Positions 100 through 62,142 of a DNA stretch of 64,000 nucleotides are shown piece by piece (position 1 is the stretch's first letter; every line of letters starts with the position of its first letter). The stretch lies in sequence record NC_070958.1. One strand, written 5' to 3'. A program made the position numbers and the translations under genes. The notes under the pieces are model-generated. The model was not told where the DNA came from. It saw only the letters and a list, made by a program, of their open reading frames with translations, and ran no database searches.

Positions 100-3000
100 A
101 TGTCTGATGAAAAGTTGGGTATCGCTAAACAGGTAATGTCTCATTTGGGAATAGAACCCGAGCAACTTCCCGAGTATATGTTCGACGATAAAACCAAGCG
201 AACCCCATTAACTAATTTGGACGAACGTGTTCTGTCTCATTATGACGAAGAGTCACTGTGGACAATGAAGACAGTTCGTTTCCTTAAAGACTTCTCTAGG
301 TTTAACGCAGGTGTTCACCTCGAGACGAATAACGCCACGTTCTTGCGTACCGCTGAGCTATTCAGGAACATGGGCATCAAGAACTATTACTTCCTTCTTC
401 AAATCAACAACCCTTTGTTGAAGGACGTTAACCCGTGGGATCCTGATCTCACAGACGAACAGAAACTGATGGTTCTTCAAGAAGCCCAGGAGAACGTTTG
501 GTATATCGTTCGTGAGCTGATCAAGATCGACGGTCGTCGTTTCCGTGCTAACCGTGCAGTCATCTCCTTTATATGGAGTTGTCTCAACCACCTTCCGACA
601 CTTATCTTGATGCCTCGTCAGAGTGGTAAGGATCAGGATGGTGAAACGGAAGTTCTCCGTCCAGATGGTAAATGGACAAAGATCAAAGATCTTAAAGTCG
701 GTGATGAGGTGTTGGCTCGTGACGGTACAATTGCCAACATAACAGGCTTCTACCCCCAGGGTGAGCAAGTCAGTTATGAGATCGAATTCATCGATGGTCG
801 TAAAACAAAAGCTGGCAGTGAACATCTCTGGACGATGTGGGATCCAAAGAAGAAGGGTTGGGTCGTCAGGGATACCGAGCACATTAAGGAACGTTTGGAT
901 AAGAATGAAGAAGGACTTTCCATTCCTCTCCCTCTTGAAGATCGCGTCACCAAGAACAAGGACTACGTTCTTCATCCTTATATCCAAGGTGTTTTGTTTA
1001 CGGCCGGTGATAAGTCTGGGCTAACATTCAAAACTGAAAAGAATGATGTCGTAGCCAGGGTTAAGAAACTCCTTACTCGTGGCTGGATCGTTACCAGTAA
1101 TGGTGATCAACACACCATTTCCATGAGAACTGATTACGACCCTACAGTTCATCGTAATGTCAAACAAGCGATGCGTGATTTCGGTATCGCGGATGTTTCC
1201 CCTAAAGACAGAGCAGTTCCGAAAGAGATCATGGAAGGTTCCCACCATGATCGCAAAATGTTCATTCGTGGCATCATGGATGTTGATGGCCATATCGAGC
1301 GTGGCGGCAGTGTCTATTACGCTAGTGCTGGTGAGAAACCATCTGAAACTGTACAACGGTTGTTCTGGTCTATTGGTGCCATTTGTAAGGTCACCAAACG
1401 CGGATACAAGGTTAACGGGGATGAACCTGGTGAACGTATCACTCGATACTCATATCGTCTCAGAGTGCGTTACACGGAGCCTGGTGAGTTGTTCCTTGTT
1501 GATGACCGGAGTTTGCTTGTATCGACGAGGGCTGTGCAATACAACAGCAAACTTTCCTTTAAATCTATCACCAAGGAAAAGAAGCTTAAACAAAGTTATT
1601 GTATCGAACTCGACCATCCTGAAAACTTATACATAACCGACAACTGGATTGTGACACACAACACAGTTGGGATGCAGGTAATGGCATTCATCATGCAGTA
1701 CCTCATCGGTCGTGGATTCAAGGCAGGTCTGATCACCCTTGCTGCATCAAACCGTATGCAGTTTGTTAACGCCATGAAGAAGATCCGTGCTGGTCTTCCT
1801 GAGTACTTGGTGAACGTCACCTATAAGGATAATGACGCCGGTAACATTTTGACCTATCAGGCGTACGGTGCTGAGAATAAGAATACATTCGAAGTCCGTG
1901 TACCTTCTGGTGGTGAAGATGGTGCTGAGAACGTGTCTCGTGGTAGTACGTTTGAAATGCTGCTCTATGACGAGCCGGCGTGGATGAAGTACATCGAAAA
2001 TATCATGAACGGTGCCGGTCCTTCTACGTTGACCGCTCAAAAGAACGCTAGAGAAAAGGGCATCCCTTACTTCACTGCCAAGGCTACAACGCCAAACAGT
2101 ATCCTGAAGGAAGAAGGGAAGTACATGTATGGTGAAATGAAGAAAGCGACAGAGTGGCGTGAAAACTTCTTTGACAGCTATTCTGAATCTCACTTGCTGC
2201 AACGTGTTACCAAGGCTTCACCCGTCAGTACGACCCAACCACATATCTGTATGCAGTTTAACCACCTTCAACTTGGTTTTGGTAAAGACTGGGTTAAGGA
2301 GACTATGGATAAGCTTTCGCTTTCCTGGTCTAAGGCAAAGATTGACTTGTTGATGATGTGGACCGAGGAAGGGAAGAACAAGGTATTCGATGATAAAGTT
2401 CGGGAGCAACTCGCAAACGTTAAACAGGAGCCTCTGTGGAACGAAGAAATTGCCAACACTGGTCTATTCATAGACTGGTATTACAGCAATGAGCGACTCA
2501 ATGAATTCTTCACCGATCCTACTGAATTCTTCTTGATGGGGATGGATACGTCCGATGCGGTAGACCGAGATGCGTGTACGTTGATTATACGGCGAATGAA
2601 GACTGGTGAGAACATTGGGATAGGTCGTTATCCCCGTGCGTTCCTGGACGACGTGACGACGGTTCTGAGGGAGATGATAGTGCGGATTGAAAACAGTCTG
2701 CTGATTATCGAACGTAACCGTGCAGTTGACATGATCGATAAGTTGCTTCTTACTCTTCCAGCTCTCGACATTGATCCTTTCAAACGTATCTTCAATGATG
2801 TCTATCAAGATCCCGTGAAGTTCCGTAACGAATGGAAGGATGTTCAGGAGGTTCATTTCAAGTACCGTACTAAAGAGTTCTATCTGAAATACAAGGAACG
2901 TTTTGGTTTCAGGACGGGACCCTCGACACGACGTCAAATGTACGACTTCCTTCATGAAGCGGTTAACTCCACTGGCGCTGGACTGCGTCACCCAATGCTT

Positions 3001-3441
3001 GCTGATGAACTTATCGGACTTGAAACAGATAACGACGGTCGCATTGACCACAGTAAAAAGGGTAACGATGACTTGGTCATCGCCTGGCTACTGACGTTCT
3101 GGTTCATTAAGTTGGGGTATAACAAATCTCTTTATGGAATACCTCCAGGTCAGACGCTTATTCAGCTGACGACATTGGTTAACGATCCCGATAAGGAAGG
3201 GTTTACCAAAGACCAACTTGAGTTGTTCATCAGAATCAAGGACCGTATTGAAGAACTCAGTAAAGAACTTGAAGACACCGATAACGATATTGTTGCCAGA
3301 CGCATAGAACTTGAGATTCGTAAGCTGGGTGAATACATCCCACGCGAACTCAGGAAGACTATCACGATTGATGAGATTCTTTCTAACGCTAGTAAAGAAC
3401 GGAACAAACGTGGTCTGGATAAACGATTCGGACGAGTATAA
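100..3441 (+). CDS. terL: Terminase large subunit (phiKZ gp25-like) containing an intein
   Basis: Walker A PRQSGK|T interrupted by intein; Walker B LLYDE; nuclease motifs GMDTS and HSKKGNDDLVIAW. Confidence 0.93.
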   Translation: MSDEKLGIAKQVMSHLGIEPEQLPEYMFDDKTKRTPLTNLDERVLSHYDEESLWTMKTVRFLKDFSRFNAGVHLETNNATFLRTAELFRNMGIKNYYFLLQINNPLLKDVNPWDPDLTDEQKLMVLQEAQENVWYIVRELIKIDGRRFRANRAVISFIWSCLNHLPTLILMPRQSGKDQDGETEVLRPDGKWTKIKDLKVGDEVLARDGTIANITGFYPQGEQVSYEIEFIDGRKTKAGSEHLWTMWDPKKKGWVVRDTEHIKERLDKNEEGLSIPLPLEDRVTKNKDYVLHPYIQGVLFTAGDKSGLTFKTEKNDVVARVKKLLTRGWIVTSNGDQHTISMRTDYDPTVHRNVKQAMRDFGIADVSPKDRAVPKEIMEGSHHDRKMFIRGIMDVDGHIERGGSVYYASAGEKPSETVQRLFWSIGAICKVTKRGYKVNGDEPGERITRYSYRLRVRYTEPGELFLVDDRSLLVSTRAVQYNSKLSFKSITKEKKLKQSYCIELDHPENLYITDNWIVTHNTVGMQVMAFIMQYLIGRGFKAGLITLAASNRMQFVNAMKKIRAGLPEYLVNVTYKDNDAGNILTYQAYGAENKNTFEVRVPSGGEDGAENVSRGSTFEMLLYDEPAWMKYIENIMNGAGPSTLTAQKNAREKGIPYFTAKATTPNSILKEEGKYMYGEMKKATEWRENFFDSYSESHLLQRVTKASPVSTTQPHICMQFNHLQLGFGKDWVKETMDKLSLSWSKAKIDLLMMWTEEGKNKVFDDKVREQLANVKQEPLWNEEIANTGLFIDWYYSNERLNEFFTDPTEFFLMGMDTSDAVDRDACTLIIRRMKTGENIGIGRYPRAFLDDVTTVLREMIVRIENSLLIIERNRAVDMIDKLLLTLPALDIDPFKRIFNDVYQDPVKFRNEWKDVQEVHFKYRTKEFYLKYKERFGFRTGPSTRRQMYDFLHEAVNSTGAGLRHPMLADELIGLETDNDGRIDHSKKGNDDLVIAWLLTFWFIKLGYNKSLYGIPPGQTLIQLTTLVNDPDKEGFTKDQLELFIRIKDRIEELSKELEDTDNDIVARRIELEIRKLGEYIPRELRKTITIDEILSNASKERNKRGLDKRFGRV
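631..1662 (+). mobile_element. Intein (344 aa) with LAGLIDADG endonuclease region, class-3 signature
   Basis: Begins DQDGETEVLRPDG after GK, ends IVTHN before Thr; block B EHLW, block F YCIEL; RGIMDVDG motif. Confidence 0.92.
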
Positions 3442-15733: not shown

Positions 15734-15960
15734 AAGGGATCAAAGACCAAAGAAGAAGGCCGGGCGAAGCCCTATTTATCTTAATTAATAGTGAAACTAG
15801 AAATAGAGATAAAGATAAGGATACTAGAGAGAACTGTTTATAGTGATCGACAGTATGCTTGGAAGGGGGTCCGGGGGAAACCAATTTGAAAACTAATTAC
15901 TAACTCACCTGGGTATATCCTGGGTGGGTTAGGGTTATGTCTGTTGATAAGGAGTATACC

Positions 15961-16287
15961 ATGAGGTATGAAAACTTTAAGGAAATATTAGAAACGTTTC
16001 CTCACTGTTATTACAACAACGATTGTTCGTTGATCATCACGAAGGTTCCGAGAGATATTCCCGGTTACTTCAAACTCGACTTAACCAACAACCAAGAATT
16101 CCGTCACGATATCAGTGGTAGTCACTACATCACTTATTCGTATATCACCGACATGAACGGTGATAAGACCATAGAAGTCTTCTTTGGCGATAATGCTGAT
16201 GAAGATGCGTATTTGACCAAACATAAACATCTGTGCGGTCACCCACAAGAAATCCTGCAATCACTGGAAGAACGGAGAATACCATGA
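15961..16287 (+). CDS. Hypothetical protein
   Basis: AAGGAG upstream of ATG 15961. Confidence 0.7.
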   Translation: MRYENFKEILETFPHCYYNNDCSLIITKVPRDIPGYFKLDLTNNQEFRHDISGSHYITYSYITDMNGDKTIEVFFGDNADEDAYLTKHKHLCGHPQEILQSLEERRIP

Positions 16288-16949
16288 ATGTTAAAAATGC
16301 ATTGATTCAACTGCGTGAGTATACCTATCAGACTCGTCACGCGAATCGTCAACTCCAAGGAGAGGTCGCCGAGTTCTCCATGGATGATCTCCAGCAAGCA
16401 CTTGACAATATCAAAGAAGAACGTGATAACACACTGTTTGGTGTGGCGTGTGGTACGACGACACTCTGGTGGGAAGGTCCACTTTATCTACAGTTGGTGG
16501 CACTTCGAGCTGCTTGGGATAATAACACCATTGGAGTAGATGAACTCTTTAAGGGTGTTAAACTGGTAGCCGACCATCCACTCTTCAAGGAGATGTTGGA
16601 ATGCAAGGTCCCCTTTAATAACAAGAAGATCTTCAATGCAGCTATGTCACGAGACGAAGCCGCAGAGATCATTCTCCATTTGTTCAAGAACGGAAACACT
16701 GATCCCGAACACCACATTCCGTATTTCGATGTACTCCAACAAGACATCCCCGACATGTGCAGACGACTGGGTCTGGGGAAGATGGATTACGAGGAACTGT
16801 GGTCCGAACTCACTTTCCCCACCAGCATGTGCCGGGGAGATTACTACGTTAACTGCGCACTGCCCGTATTGGAATTCATGAAGCGTAAACAACTTCGTGA
16901 AGTCATCGCTGCATCCAAAGGTCAAACTTTCACTCAAGAGGAACTGTAA
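16284..16949 (+). CDS. Hypothetical protein
   Basis: GGAG upstream; ATGA overlap with the previous gene. Confidence 0.75.
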   Translation: MNVKNALIQLREYTYQTRHANRQLQGEVAEFSMDDLQQALDNIKEERDNTLFGVACGTTTLWWEGPLYLQLVALRAAWDNNTIGVDELFKGVKLVADHPLFKEMLECKVPFNNKKIFNAAMSRDEAAEIILHLFKNGNTDPEHHIPYFDVLQQDIPDMCRRLGLGKMDYEELWSELTFPTSMCRGDYYVNCALPVLEFMKRKQLREVIAASKGQTFTQEEL

Positions 16950-56626: not shown

Positions 56627-57940
56627 TTACAAACTGATTGTGTCGAGGTCCAGTGTAATAGTCTTCAACGTGGATACGTGCATCCCTTTCATGCGCGTCA
56701 GCATGAACTGGGTGAAGATGTAGACAACTTCAGCTGAAACACGAGTCTCTATAGACCCCAACTTCTCACCACAACAGGTCCGGCAGAGGTTATCATCGGG
56801 CTGGACACAGAACTGCGGAACGCGCATCTTGATGGGTTTACCGATGAGTGCCTTGTCACCACTCTCGATGAGGACAGGTTTCCCATCAACCATGTGATAA
56901 CCGCCAACCCAGCCCTTGAATGTGTCCTTGGAAATCACCACATCCTCAGTACGAGTGGTACCGCAATCTACAGAACCTACAGAGATACGGTTAGTAAGGA
57001 GGATTGCTACCTTAACTTCCGCACCACCTTCACCAGTGGCGTTACCCCGGTCGAACGACGCAGAGATAGCAGTGTTGATGTACTTGGGGAAGTGATCATG
57101 ATCCCAACCTTCATTCAGGGATTTCCGTAGCAGGGTATATTTACCGGTATTGAAATCAGGAACCATGTCAAAGATGAGGAACATCTTCTTACGGGCGTTA
57201 TCGATAAACTTGCCATTGATAAAGAAGTCTTTGGAAGGACCACTATACTGGATCTTGGCATCCATAGCGACTACTTCATCGATCATCTTAGCAACGGCGA
57301 CCGGGTCGCCCAGTTTACCTTCCTTTTCCAACTCAGCAAGCAACTTATCCCGATGCGCAATAACATCAGGATGCACTGTGAGTACGTCGATGGAAGAAGC
57401 CTTAACGAATACATCGTTCATCCCTTCCAGGAAGTCGAGATTCTTGGTGATGTCCAGGCATTGGTTTACAGAAGCTTTACCAGCAGGAACCGTTCCCTCG
57501 GGACCAGGGTTGTCAACCATGATGGAGTCAATCAGACCCTTGATAGTTCCACCACCTATCTTGCCGTTGATGTAAGAACCAGCATCACCCACGGCTTCTT
57601 TGATCACAACCATGTTGACCAAGAAGATCCCTACCGTGGTTTCGTACTTTTGATTCAACCAACCATTGGTAGTTTGATCTACTGTAAACTTCTCGTTCTT
57701 ATGGAAGAGAGGTGCTTCGAAAGGAGTGTGCTCAATAAACACTTTCTCTCCATCCGGACGGAAGAAATAGATCTTCTTCTCTTCCTCATCCCGGTAGACG
57801 GAATACGGAGCTGTCTTCAGTTTGGCCACGTTGTTTGGTGTGGACTTAACCAAAGAAAAGATAGAGAGCAGAAAGGTCTTTCGGGTATACGCCCTGGCAT
57901 TGAACGCTTCTACCAGGAATTCGAATTTGTTCATTGACAC
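56627..57940 (-). CDS. Virion RNAP beta-prime C-terminal fragment (phiKZ gp80-like)
   Basis: VDCGT, MRVPQFC...CRTCCG, TQFMLTRMKGMH. Confidence 0.85.
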   Translation of the reverse strand: MSMNKFEFLVEAFNARAYTRKTFLLSIFSLVKSTPNNVAKLKTAPYSVYRDEEEKKIYFFRPDGEKVFIEHTPFEAPLFHKNEKFTVDQTTNGWLNQKYETTVGIFLVNMVVIKEAVGDAGSYINGKIGGGTIKGLIDSIMVDNPGPEGTVPAGKASVNQCLDITKNLDFLEGMNDVFVKASSIDVLTVHPDVIAHRDKLLAELEKEGKLGDPVAVAKMIDEVVAMDAKIQYSGPSKDFFINGKFIDNARKKMFLIFDMVPDFNTGKYTLLRKSLNEGWDHDHFPKYINTAISASFDRGNATGEGGAEVKVAILLTNRISVGSVDCGTTRTEDVVISKDTFKGWVGGYHMVDGKPVLIESGDKALIGKPIKMRVPQFCVQPDDNLCRTCCGEKLGSIETRVSAEVVYIFTQFMLTRMKGMHVSTLKTITLDLDTISL

Positions 57941-58869: not shown

Positions 58870-59538
58870 ATGTCTAATAAGGTTCAACTTAAAGCAGCAC
58901 GGAAGCGTGCCGAACGTAAAGTAGCCTCCAGCCGTAAAAACGGTCGTCGTCGTCTCGCTATCCATCAGAGTGTTCCTCAACTCATGGAAGCCGCCAAGAG
59001 CCAGATCGAACTCGCCCTGGAACGTCACCAGCTGGAGAGTCCTTTCGACATCGCCCGTCGAAGCGATGGTAGTGAAGTCCCTGCCATGGATAAGGCTGCT
59101 ATGATCCAAGGTTGCCGCAAGTCCACCACCGAAGTTTTCCGGATGTTCAGCTACCTGGCCGCAGCCAAGTCCCTGGTCGATCAGGGTCGTATCGAATTCG
59201 AATTCAAACTGGACCTGGATCAGTGCGCTGCTGATATCGCTGCTCTGGATCGTCGCGTTATCCGTCTGAACGTTCTGGTAGAAGGTGAAGATGACGTCTT
59301 CGGTTACGAACTCATGGATATCGGTTCTACTCTGGAGAACCTGGGTTCTGTCATCTATGATGAAGTCTCTCGTCTTGAGCCGCAAGCTCTGGTCCTCGAC
59401 AGCTACATCAATCATGCCGCCCAACAAGTCGTCGCTGATCCTGAAAATGAGATCGCTGACCTCAAGCAGGCCAACCAAACCGTACTCCAATCTCTGGCGT
59501 ACACTCTGATCAAACCCCACATGGTAAATAAAGCTTAA
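58870..59538 (+). CDS. Conserved protein, probably virion-associated
   Basis: Basic N-terminus; GGAG upstream; high-expression codons. Confidence 0.75.
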   Translation: MSNKVQLKAARKRAERKVASSRKNGRRRLAIHQSVPQLMEAAKSQIELALERHQLESPFDIARRSDGSEVPAMDKAAMIQGCRKSTTEVFRMFSYLAAAKSLVDQGRIEFEFKLDLDQCAADIAALDRRVIRLNVLVEGEDDVFGYELMDIGSTLENLGSVIYDEVSRLEPQALVLDSYINHAAQQVVADPENEIADLKQANQTVLQSLAYTLIKPHMVNKA

Positions 59539-59549
59539 GGAGCTTTTGA

Positions 59550-61145
59550 ATGTCTGATCAAGAAAAACCCATCGACGTACTGCGCGCGGCAGTTCTTCTC
59601 GGTAAGCCGGACACTGTTGGGTTCGGCATCCCCATCTTTACTGGTGGGCTCAAAGAGCAGCACCGTGTAATCCTGGAAGCAGCTCAGCTCTTCTATGCCA
59701 TCCGTGAGCTCGAAAGCGAGATGGAAAAGAACGGTCGCACCGACCAGACCACACTGAACTCTCTCCGTGTTCGTTACACGGAACACACTGAGGAACACTT
59801 CCAGGGTGTAAGTGAGAAACAACTGGCAGAAATGCTGGTGAACTATTTCACTTTCTACCGACGGACCCTCGACCGCATCCAGATGCGTGATGATGTCACC
59901 GCCGAGCGCCAACACAAGCCCAATGCCAACGTGGTGACTACTCAACGCGGTCCCATCGGGATCATTAACAGTATCAAGCCCGGTAAGCTCGGGAATCTGT
60001 CCATGAAGGATAGGATGCGGAAGAACTTCGCCAAATCCTCCGGTAGTGTGGACGGTTTCTCGATCATGCTGATGAACAGCCGGGTCTTCCTGAAGATCAA
60101 GCTCCCCACTCCCATGGACCTTCTGTTGTTGATGAACAAGATCGCCAACAAACTCTCTGGGTTTGGTAAGCGTGTTCGTGCATCATCCCTGGAGCTGGAA
60201 CGTGCACTGATCGTCCGTGAGGTTGTCGAGTTCGTTATCGAGATGGCGACCTACTGGAGTGTCTCTGACATCCTGGATGCTCGCGAACTGCTCAACGTGA
60301 TCAAGGAAAGCGACGCCAACCACCTGGCTGTGGCAATCCTTGCAGCTTCTGCACCCAAAGGTCTGAACTACCGCATGAGCTGCCTGGCTCACAAGTGTAA
60401 CTTCAGCGATGACGTTCTGATCGACGCGGCCAACATGGTTCACTTCGACAACGAACGTTACCCGGCGAAGTACATGGAACAGGTCCAGATGATCTTGAAC
60501 ACCGGTCACAAGTTCTCTATCCAGGAACTGCACGATTCCGATGTTCCCTTCATCGATACTGACGGGACTGAGATCGAGACACGGTTCACCATGAACGATG
60601 GATCCGTGAGCATCGAGCTCAAAGAACCGTACCTCGCAGATTACTTCGAGTGTTTCGATAACGCCGCCGCTCGTATCAACCCTCAACTCCGTCAACTGGC
60701 TGTCCAGTTCTCTGAACCTGAGCGCTACAAGCGCGAGTACCAGAGCTACATGGGTAGTATCCGGACCAACAACTACACGCAGTGGGTAGATAAGATCATC
60801 TTCCACGTAGCTGCCGGTGAAGAAGGTGAAGACGAAGTAATGTCCCGCGGGGATAACCCGAAAGAGTTCGACGAAGGTCTGATCGACTGCCTGGGTAGCC
60901 AAGAAGAACTCGCCGGTATCTTGCTGGAGCGTGTCATCAAGGTCATCCCCCGCCTGTCCTACACCAGTGTAGGGATTCTGTCAACAGAGTGTCCTCAGTG
61001 CAAACAAACCACTGATGAAGAAGTTACCAAGGTTCATGGTGGTTATACCCCCATCGATCCGTTCCTGACTTTTTTCGACCACACCCAAATGTTGATAGAA
61101 CTGCGGAGGGAGCTGGCGATTACACAAGAGGAGCTTCTTTCCTAG
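59550..61145 (+). CDS. Conserved phiKZ-like protein, probably tail/baseplate assembly
   Basis: 531 aa; CxxxxC and CPQC motifs; slippery heptamer near the 3' end. Confidence 0.8.
   Translation: MSDQEKPIDVLRAAVLLGKPDTVGFGIPIFTGGLKEQHRVILEAAQLFYAIRELESEMEKNGRTDQTTLNSLRVRYTEHTEEHFQGVSEKQLAEMLVNYFTFYRRTLDRIQMRDDVTAERQHKPNANVVTTQRGPIGIINSIKPGKLGNLSMKDRMRKNFAKSSGSVDGFSIMLMNSRVFLKIKLPTPMDLLLLMNKIANKLSGFGKRVRASSLELERALIVREVVEFVIEMATYWSVSDILDARELLNVIKESDANHLAVAILAASAPKGLNYRMSCLAHKCNFSDDVLIDAANMVHFDNERYPAKYMEQVQMILNTGHKFSIQELHDSDVPFIDTDGTEIETRFTMNDGSVSIELKEPYLADYFECFDNAAARINPQLRQLAVQFSEPERYKREYQSYMGSIRTNNYTQWVDKIIFHVAAGEEGEDEVMSRGDNPKEFDEGLIDCLGSQEELAGILLERVIKVIPRLSYTSVGILSTECPQCKQTTDEEVTKVHGGYTPIDPFLTFFDHTQMLIELRRELAITQEELLS
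61070..61076 (+). promoter_or_regulatory. Candidate -1 ribosomal frameshift site T TTT TTC
   Basis: Correct X XXY YYZ phase in the 59550 frame; the -1 frame is stop-free from 61019 to 61591. Confidence 0.55.
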
Positions 61146-61270
61146 AACTGCCGGGTTCGCTCTCTCAATTCCAGAAGGCAGAAGAAGTAGCCATCCGTGA
61201 GTTCATAGCACTACAAGAATTAGAGGGGCTCGAAACAAGAGCCCTTTATAAGAAAGAGTTAAAGATATTC

Positions 61271-61591
61271 ATGAAATCCAGAGGTTGGATAAGTGAACGC
61301 GATTCTTTCTCCATTCTGTTGTGCTATAACCGTTCTCTAAGAGAGTACACACACAGATGGTCACCCGGCTCTTTTGGTGAAATGTTTGGGTATCGTGAGT
61401 ACTCTGAGATCATACCGCTTAAAGAGTTTCTTACAACCCCAATGGCGGTGGTCGAGGATATTTTGGAAGGTGTCGGTAAAGGCCGCACCGATATTAAGAA
61501 GGCGAAGGACGCAGCACGGTCTGCCGACGAAAAACGTAAGGAAGATCCTGCAAGCATTCTTCAACGAGAACTTAATAAACTCAAGGGGTAA
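61271..61591 (+). CDS. Hypothetical protein, possibly expressed as a -1 frameshift extension of 59550-61145
   Basis: Frame is open about 250 nt upstream of this ATG, with protein-like sequence but no ATG/GTG/TTG. Confidence 0.7.
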   Translation: MKSRGWISERDSFSILLCYNRSLREYTHRWSPGSFGEMFGYREYSEIIPLKEFLTTPMAVVEDILEGVGKGRTDIKKAKDAARSADEKRKEDPASILQRELNKLKG

Positions 61592-61596
61592 TTTAA

Positions 61597-62142
61597 ATGG
61601 GTAAGTATATTCCGCCTGTTACCGAGCAACGCGACTCCGCTGTTGTTCTCCAGGGCGAGAAAGAAAAGAACATGGACACCTCCGTTGGTGTTCCTACCGA
61701 AGTTCGTCCGACTACACCGGTCGAAATCTACAAAGATAAGATCGACGAATTTGTCGGTTTCCTCAAACACGAGAACAACGCCGGTCAGCCCGAAATCCGT
61801 GCTAAGTATCAGGTTGGTGTTATCACCATGTTCGATCTGATCCTGGGAATGGATTACAACGAGATGGAAGAAGTGATCGACCACCTGGTCATTACTATTG
61901 GTAAGCACCCGCACGTCTTCACCAACAGTAACACCCTGGCACCGCTCTACGCAGTCGAGAACCGCAAGTTGCTCGTAGCAGCGTCCATCCAACGCTACAA
62001 GTGGTTCATGACCTTCTTCATCGGTCTGTCGAACAACATTCGTCAGCGTGCGCAGTATGTCGAAGGTTACGACATTACTCGGTTCATCTCCATGTTCCCT
62101 GTTAAGGCCCGTGAGAACCTCCACAACTACATCTATCGTTAA
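61597..62142 (+). CDS. Conserved phiKZ-like protein, probably virion-associated
   Basis: 181-aa ORF followed by a terminator. Confidence 0.8.
   Translation: MGKYIPPVTEQRDSAVVLQGEKEKNMDTSVGVPTEVRPTTPVEIYKDKIDEFVGFLKHENNAGQPEIRAKYQVGVITMFDLILGMDYNEMEEVIDHLVITIGKHPHVFTNSNTLAPLYAVENRKLLVAASIQRYKWFMTFFIGLSNNIRQRAQYVEGYDITRFISMFPVKARENLHNYIYR

Follow-up and report, generated by a model that had tools for sequence, protein, structure and literature searches.

The first of two adjacent open reading frames (ORFs) at positions 59550-61591 of a stretch of 64,000 nucleotides (nt) from sequence record NC_070958.1 (called the window in what follows) belongs to the phiKZ gp77 family, common to the nucleus-forming jumbo phages of the phiKZ type, and it is probably decoded in two ways: in addition to the protein expected from this frame (ORF1), a slip back by one base near its 3' end is predicted to give a form of ~680 residues. 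Taken as a whole, this is the best explanation of the sequence comparisons described below, with a probability of roughly 80%. The window corresponds to Aeromonas phage D6 (MN131137.2, genus Ludhianavirus, 259.8 kb), and positions 59550-61591 are 100% identical to that record, with unchanged coordinates. The mechanism itself is ordinary and it is the location that is new, given that the gene is present in all the chimalliviruses sampled and the frameshift is unannotated in the 23 records inspected.

According to the proposed mechanism, most ribosomes would remain in the zero frame until the stop codon at 61143-61145 and would produce a protein of 531 residues, the last 22 of which lie in a C-terminal helix. 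A minority would slip back by one base when the two Phe codons of the heptamer T_TTT_TTC occupy the P and A sites, and would then read the -1 frame past the zero-frame stop, through a 125-nt stretch regarded as 'intergenic' and through the small downstream ORF (ORF2), to complete the protein of ~680 residues. In this long form a Pro-x-Pro linker would take the place of the terminal helix and would be followed by a helical domain (~150 residues) and then by a charged tail, and presumably both isoforms are needed.

The zero-frame codons near position 61068 (act ttt ttc gac), checked one by one, place the heptamer in the X_XXY_YYZ phase, 75 nt ahead of the ORF1 stop. The -1 frame contains no stop codon from 61019 until its terminal one at 61589-61591, that is, for 147 codons past the zero-frame stop, and the first ATG, GTG or TTG that it offers after 61019 is the ATG at 61271. 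The computed products have 531 and 680 residues (509 + 171). The initial annotation of the window had described these same elements (ORFs of 531 and 106 residues, the phase of the heptamer, a -1 frame open over 61019-61591, a stretch free of start codons, and products of 531 and about 680 residues), and all of them were confirmed. For comparison, the ORFs of at least 150 residues in the window contain 28 in-phase heptamers of the form X_XXW_WWN, which are followed by -1 runs with a median length of 11 codons; only two of these runs reach 100 codons or more, and the one at the ORF1 site has 173. The other, a T_TTA_AAT at 1558 with a -1 frame of 627 codons, is a false alarm, as the ORF of 159 residues that contains it (1157-1636) is spurious and nested in one of 1113 residues (100-3441).

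Conservation of the heptamer and of the two overlapping frames

Homologs of ORF1 were found by tblastn in 128 phage records, all with Gram-negative hosts, including those of phiKZ (PHIKZ077), EL, OBP, RisingSun, Miami and pTD1. From GenBank, 23 diverse chimallivirus loci (among them phiKZ gp77/gp076.4, EL and OBP) were taken as the comparison set, and to these were added 36 loci from IMG/VR, four of which duplicate GenBank phages, and three contigs for distant representatives. The IMG/VR loci were gathered with a peptide pattern that ends in Phe-Phe, and the scan is therefore biased for these residues, whereas their codons, the base ahead of them and the open frame are free of this bias. Pseudomonas phage vB_PQ1 (PQ516283, L024) was excluded from the survey because it looks like a low-quality assembly; the record holds 488 features in 184 kb, and its ORF1 homolog is annotated as several short pieces.

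In each of the 23 GenBank loci, the small downstream ORF occupies the -1 frame relative to the ORF1 homolog, even with annotated gaps that span -31 to 218 nt; one of the in-phase heptamers T_TTT_TTC, T_TTT_TTT and T_TTT_TTA is found 42-81 nt (mostly 75 nt) ahead of the stop codon; and no stop interrupts the -1 frame between a point before the heptamer and the end of the downstream ORF. In D3, D9 and LAh10 the heptamer is identical to that of D6. The base that precedes the two Phe codons is T in all 23 relatives, even though the codon whose third position it fills does not specify the same residue in all of them. A canonical heptamer is also present in 35 of the 36 IMG/VR loci and in one of the three further contigs, and in 34 of these 35 IMG/VR loci the extension has a length of 172-185 residues, the remaining one being truncated where the locus ends. 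The +1 frame, used as a control in 35 IMG/VR loci, closes after 3-8 codons in 24 of them and after 43-57 in the rest. The three loci without a canonical heptamer, which are distant or odd, have either a run of six T's that is off by one base (L057 and L082) or a run of five (L084), and all of them retain an in-phase U_UUU tetramer at the position of the A site together with the open -1 frame. Between the heptamer and the ORF2 stop there are 153-187 codons (61 loci that reach the stop), and the annotated starts of ORF2 are scattered from 14 to 87 codons past the heptamer.

The pattern of nucleotide substitution is that of a translated -1 frame. Over the first 120 nt past the ORF1 stop, 38 related pairs, which are not independent of each other, accumulate 232, 178 and 462 differences at -1 codon positions 1, 2 and 3, respectively, and the pair formed by N1M2 and Yubaba accumulates 2, 4 and 20. 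Within the genus, an ungapped comparison of four Ludhianavirus genomes (D6, D3, D9 and LAh10) gives variable sites distributed as 0/0/5 by codon position in 61146-61270, all of them synonymous, as 3/1/59 in ORF1 ahead of the heptamer and as 1/0/4 in ORF2, while the 69-nt overlap has none. In the overlap, the identity between the two large groups of phages is 0.217 for the -1 frame versus 0.121 for the zero frame, and the two prolines of the Pro-x-Pro motif are invariant in 16 phages, with no zero-frame column above 0.75. In addition, what precedes the annotated start in one phage can be aligned to a part of another phage's annotated coding sequence (e.g., N1M2 and SXP01), the ATG of D6 aligns with internal positions of its relatives, and in D6, CF8, PS1, pEt-SU, Survivor and phiKZ the conserved -1 sequence runs without a start codon for 51-87 codons; the phiKZ counterpart of 61146-61270 has 218 nt.

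The zero-frame tail is conserved as well, both in length (75 or 81 nt as far as the stop codon in most cases) and in sequence, and it lies in a helix (residues 504-530) modelled with a predicted local distance difference test score (pLDDT) of at least 90. Since the -1 frame behaves as coding sequence from the heptamer on and the zero-frame tail is conserved, both products are, to judge from the sequences, under selection. A block of nucleotides at ~61127-61145, nearly invariant in 14 phages, is best explained by this double coding. With respect to initiation, a GGAG-type motif is located 5-6 nt ahead of the starts of neighbouring genes and is absent ahead of the ATG at 61271 and of the GenBank start at 61382; this comparison rests on the window sequences upstream of the starts, with generic anti-Shine-Dalgarno energies taken as an indication. 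It is unlikely that ORF2 is initiated independently in D6. Taken together, the heptamers of the orthologs, the open overlap and the coding signature lend support to the -1 frameshift that the initial annotation had put forward as a probable fusion of the two ORFs: across the orthologs the heptamer and the open -1 overlap are kept, and many of them have no start codon in the stretch.

Proposed slippage mechanism and rival explanations

In E. coli, no class of heptamers is more efficient than the one that includes U_UU.U_UU.Y, U_UU.C and U_UU.U come next after A_AA.G among the tetramers, and insertion sequence (IS) elements make use of U_UU.U_UU.C (PMC4066793). Several observations nevertheless weigh against decoding in two frames. 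The search for a downstream RNA structure was negative: the consensus fold of 14 sequences reaches -3.2 kcal/mol with zero compensatory pairs, the fold of D6 is no better than those of shuffled sequences (z +0.98), the 60 nt past the site have, on average, less structure than other windows of the same gene (mean z +0.84 in 21 phages), and Rfam returned a single sub-threshold chance match. An upstream Shine-Dalgarno-like stimulator was not found either. In several relatives (AH04, OBP, pTD1, LucasX, Wellington and SXP01) the ORF1 stop is soon followed by a start codon, which makes a free-standing ORF2 product possible there. The Phe-Phe pair is conserved at the protein level and accounts for part of the T run, but only for part, because it leaves the invariant preceding T and the choice of codons unexplained. 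Finally, what is known of the 680-residue transframe protein comes entirely from comparative evidence. PHIKZ077 appears among the source data (supplementary file 6) that accompany a proteomic study of co-fractionation in infected cells (PMC10449902), and these data gave nothing on isoforms. The negative folding results agree with the initial annotation, which had seen no clear stimulatory structure, and, because no stimulator was found, the efficiency of the frameshift is probably low and may be very low.

The main rival explanation places the slip in transcription: the RNA polymerase of the phage would add one U on the run of six or seven T's, and the outcome would be the same fusion of 680 residues. 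At least six T's are common to nearly all the loci, L057 and L082 keep six of them without a perfect heptamer, and runs of seven U's are prone to slippage and are avoided in the genes of E. coli (PMC4066793). Runs of six or more T's are also depleted in the window, where there are 24 matches to TTTTTTH versus 43.8 expected, and 99 of 100 shuffles have at least as many. Efficient slippage by bacterial polymerases, however, usually involves A/T runs of 8-9 or more, with no fixed phase. The runs considered here, of 5-7, are shorter, they are phased in every locus with a U_UUN tetramer at the position of the A site, and L084, with just five T's, retains both the phase and the open -1 frame; furthermore, this class of heptamer is a proven ribosomal shifter (PMC4066793). 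Because the phase is fixed and the locus with five T's keeps it, the slip appears to be ribosomal rather than transcriptional, and a transcriptional origin is considered improbable.

The remaining explanations dispense with slippage. If ORF1 and ORF2 were two ordinary genes, the second would start at the ATG at 61271 or at a non-canonical codon nearer the ORF1 stop, and the heptamer would be a by-product of Phe-Phe. This is the way in which databases present the locus, as the 23 GenBank records inspected all annotate two separate coding sequences and none a joined one, and it agrees with the near invariance of Phe508 and Phe509 and with the ATG or GTG that closely follows the ORF1 stop in several relatives. 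What makes it very improbable is that conserved sequence of a coding character in the -1 frame sets in within ORF1, at the heptamer, and not past the ORF1 stop; that D6, phiKZ and the four other phages named with them have no start codon for 51-87 conserved codons; that the T before the Phe codons is invariant in the 23 relatives and every locus examined shows the same frame relation; and that the ATG at 61271 lacks a ribosome-binding motif. It could also be argued that a single ancestral gene was split by a sequencing error in the homopolymer or by a recent frameshift mutation, given that homopolymers are classic error sites and that PQ516283 is visibly fragmented. This can hardly be credited for an arrangement that is the same in ~58 independent genomes and metagenome contigs, and with a zero-frame tail whose conservation in length, sequence and predicted helix is not expected if it were never translated. 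Decoding of ORF1 in two frames, with a ribosomal slip at the heptamer, is the reading followed in the rest of the text.

The ORF1 protein and its locus

Relatives of the ORF1 protein were collected by an exhaustive search (217 representatives at E ≤0.001), a word-index protein search having returned few. In Pfam there is no family for ORF1, ORF2, the extension (E up to 0.01) or five neighbours, and the two protein groups that match ORF1 and the extension, phrog_4585 and phrog_19747, are both of unknown function. An alignment of 81 sequences shows no variation at C278, C283 or C481 and at least 90% conservation at C484; in a set of 20 sequences, none of the four varies. The AlphaFold2 model of ORF1 is confident (pLDDT 90, predicted template modelling score 0.90); a Foldseek search with it against the PDB gave nothing below E 0.5, the sequences of ORF1 and of the extension had chance matches only to PDB chains, and among the predicted viral structures of BFVD it matches its relatives in other jumbo phages, with Special G, phiEaH2, RSF1, RP12 and Eowyn as examples from outside the chimalliviruses. 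The model of the extension, based on a shallow alignment of 16 sequences, is not usable (pLDDT 51) and is helical at low confidence. In RefSeq, phiKZ gp77 is not flagged as structural, whereas gp79 and gp80 are. The ORF1 protein is probably a zinc-binding factor and not a major component of the virion, a function that is proposed tentatively.

The records of LAh10, ZPAH34, RisingSun and Joad call the ORF1 homolog a 'putative ZipA-like cell division protein', which has no support in Pfam. The papers found with a mention of 'gp77' deal with the gp77 of other phages. The homolog of KPN8 is labelled 'putative baseplate protein'.

The features of the locus are collected in Table 1. In the GenBank record of D6, ORF1 (D6_0071, 59550-61145) and a short gene (D6_0072, 61382-61591) are both annotated as 'hypothetical protein'. 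D6_0072, like its equivalents in D3 and D9, begins at an internal ATG and has 69 residues, and in LAh10 the version of 106 residues is the one annotated.

Table 1. Features of the ORF1 locus in Aeromonas phage D6 (window coordinates).
Feature	Coordinates	Strand	Description
ORF1 (D6_0071)	59550-61145	+	531 residues, zero frame; phiKZ gp77 homolog; member of phrog_4585
Putative slippery heptamer T_TTT_TTC	61070-61076	+	Last base of codon 507 plus the codons of Phe508 and Phe509
Predicted dual-coding overlap	61077-61145	+	Zero frame: last 22 residues of the short form; -1 frame: start of the extension
Predicted -1 frame extension	61076-61591	+	171 codons plus stop; predicted helical, with charged C-terminal tail; match to phrog_19747
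Stretch annotated as intergenic	61146-61270	+	125 nt; -1 frame open, without ATG, GTG or TTG
ORF2 (mechanical ORF listing)	61271-61591	+	106 residues

The neighbours of ORF1 in D6 are an RNA polymerase beta subunit (phrog_2962, encoded upstream on the opposite strand at 56627-57934), a phiKZ gp79-like protein, a gp78-like protein, small ORFs of unknown function and, downstream, a DNA polymerase; in phiKZ, a helicase gene is close to the counterpart locus. The initial annotation had assigned the pair to a virion region, and this description holds in part: a subunit of the virion RNA polymerase and a homolog of a head protein adjoin it, but the DNA polymerase of D6 and the helicase of phiKZ are also close. 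The flanking genes at 58870-59538 (the position of phiKZ gp78) and 61597-62142 (181 residues, phrog_14374) accompany the ORF pair in most of the relatives examined. Within the linker that is free of start codons, positions 61226-61244 contain a perfect GC-rich hairpin of 6 bp with a 7-nt loop, followed by TTTAT; a terminator scan gave no score for it.

If the proposal is correct, every chimallivirus genome, including those of phiKZ, EL, OBP and RisingSun, is mis-annotated at this point, a protein of ~75-78 kDa is missing from the proteome lists, and gene callers have produced artefacts in the form of the small 'genes' that follow ORF1 (phiKZ gp076.4, D6_0072 and others), or at the least in their variable annotated starts. 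A full-text search found no match that links phiKZ-like phages with a frameshift here, most subscription journals being outside its reach, and to that extent the statement of the initial annotation that none was known for this gene pair stands. A deeply conserved U_UUU_UUY site that is free of stimulators would also be a system for the study of slippage in Pseudomonas, Aeromonas, Vibrio and enterobacterial hosts. Moreover, it would offer a way into what this conserved protein does: a pair of isoforms that differ in their C-termini points to an adaptor or a chaperone, and interaction data that already exist could be searched for its partners.

Comparison with known systems

In BFVD, the model of ORF1 also has weaker matches, with Foldseek E values of 5e-4 to 2e-2 and a target-normalised template modelling (TM) score of ~0.5, to models of T4-like proteins of 225-285 residues labelled 'baseplate hub subunit / hub assembly protein'; the PDB search returned no solved structure of this T4 family. 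The corresponding Pfam family, PF12322 (T4_baseplate), on which T4 gp26 and gp51 score 216 and 178 bits, matches three of the 81 relatives of ORF1 (best E 1.2e-5), and phrog_150 ('baseplate hub') matches one; a PF12322 scan of ten distant relatives turned up none of these three. Both gp26 and gp51 appear in the list of hub assembly chaperones, and the finished particle does not contain gp51 (PMC3004832, Table 2). In both families a C-P-x-C motif is among four conserved cysteines, which in the T4 family are C7, C85, C88 and C185. The ORF1 protein may thus be a distant, enlarged relative, of twice the size, of these T4 chaperones, which is to be taken as a lead and not as membership of the family.

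The relationship is weakened by the lack of a PF12322 match in the D6 protein itself, by a profile-profile probability that varies from 3 to 61% and by the TM score of ~0.5. The comparison was attempted with phmmer, with a hidden Markov model built from two sequences and with hhalign against alignments of 9, 4 and 46 sequences of the T4 family; a reversed control gave E 0.45. The two halves of the proteins correspond in swapped order: the N-terminal half of the T4 proteins, which contains C-P-x-C, resembles residues ~405-505 of ORF1, and the C-terminal half resembles residues ~245-340. This could be due to a circular permutation, or the match could be a chance one with no true homology. T4 gene 26 also gives two products, 26 and 26', but by internal initiation (RefSeq; T4 locus 15803-16429), and neither gene 26 nor gene 51 of T4 has an annotated frameshift.

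If ORF1 is indeed related to gp26/gp51, its long isoform would tether the body of the chaperone to a second partner, as lambda GT does. A broader proposal, which for the moment is rather doubtful, is that the whole of the Chimalliviridae, perhaps together with allied jumbo myoviruses, relies on recoding of the gp77 family, that gp77 is the counterpart of gp26/gp51 with a GT-like long isoform, and that the same principle arose or persisted in a second, structurally unrelated lineage of chaperones without an RNA stimulator.

As in the orfA-orfB pair of the IS1/IS3 families and in E. coli dnaX, the proposed slip would follow the X_XXY_YYZ mechanism on bacterial ribosomes. The sites of IS1/IS3 and dnaX are usually accompanied by a downstream hairpin or pseudoknot and/or by an upstream Shine-Dalgarno-like stimulator, unlike the site of D6, at which no stimulator was found. 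The dnaX shift, for its part, shortens the product.

The frameshift of the tail assembly chaperones of lambda (G/GT) and P2 (E/E+E') was reportedly described by Xu, Hendrix and Duda in 2004, and no strong stimulatory RNA structure is known to be involved in it. As in these phages, a -1 slip shortly before the first ORF ends would generate an isoform that is extended at its C-terminus, with the whole N-terminal body in common, the extension would have ~150-170 residues, and it is the arrangement rather than the sequence that is conserved across a large group of phages. The differences are equally clear: the short form of ORF1, with 531 residues versus ~100-150, is about four times larger; the gene is not located between the tail-tube and tape-measure genes, but next to a subunit of the virion RNA polymerase, a homolog of a head protein and replication genes; and the heptamer is of the U_UUU_UUN type, different from those of lambda G/GT and P2. 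No tail-chaperone family of Pfam matches the D6 proteins, nor does one appear among the 25 families shown of the 57 matched by the 81 relatives. The term 'G/GT-like', used in the initial annotation, is therefore appropriate for the architecture and not for family membership, size or gene position: ORF1 resembles G/GT in architecture only.

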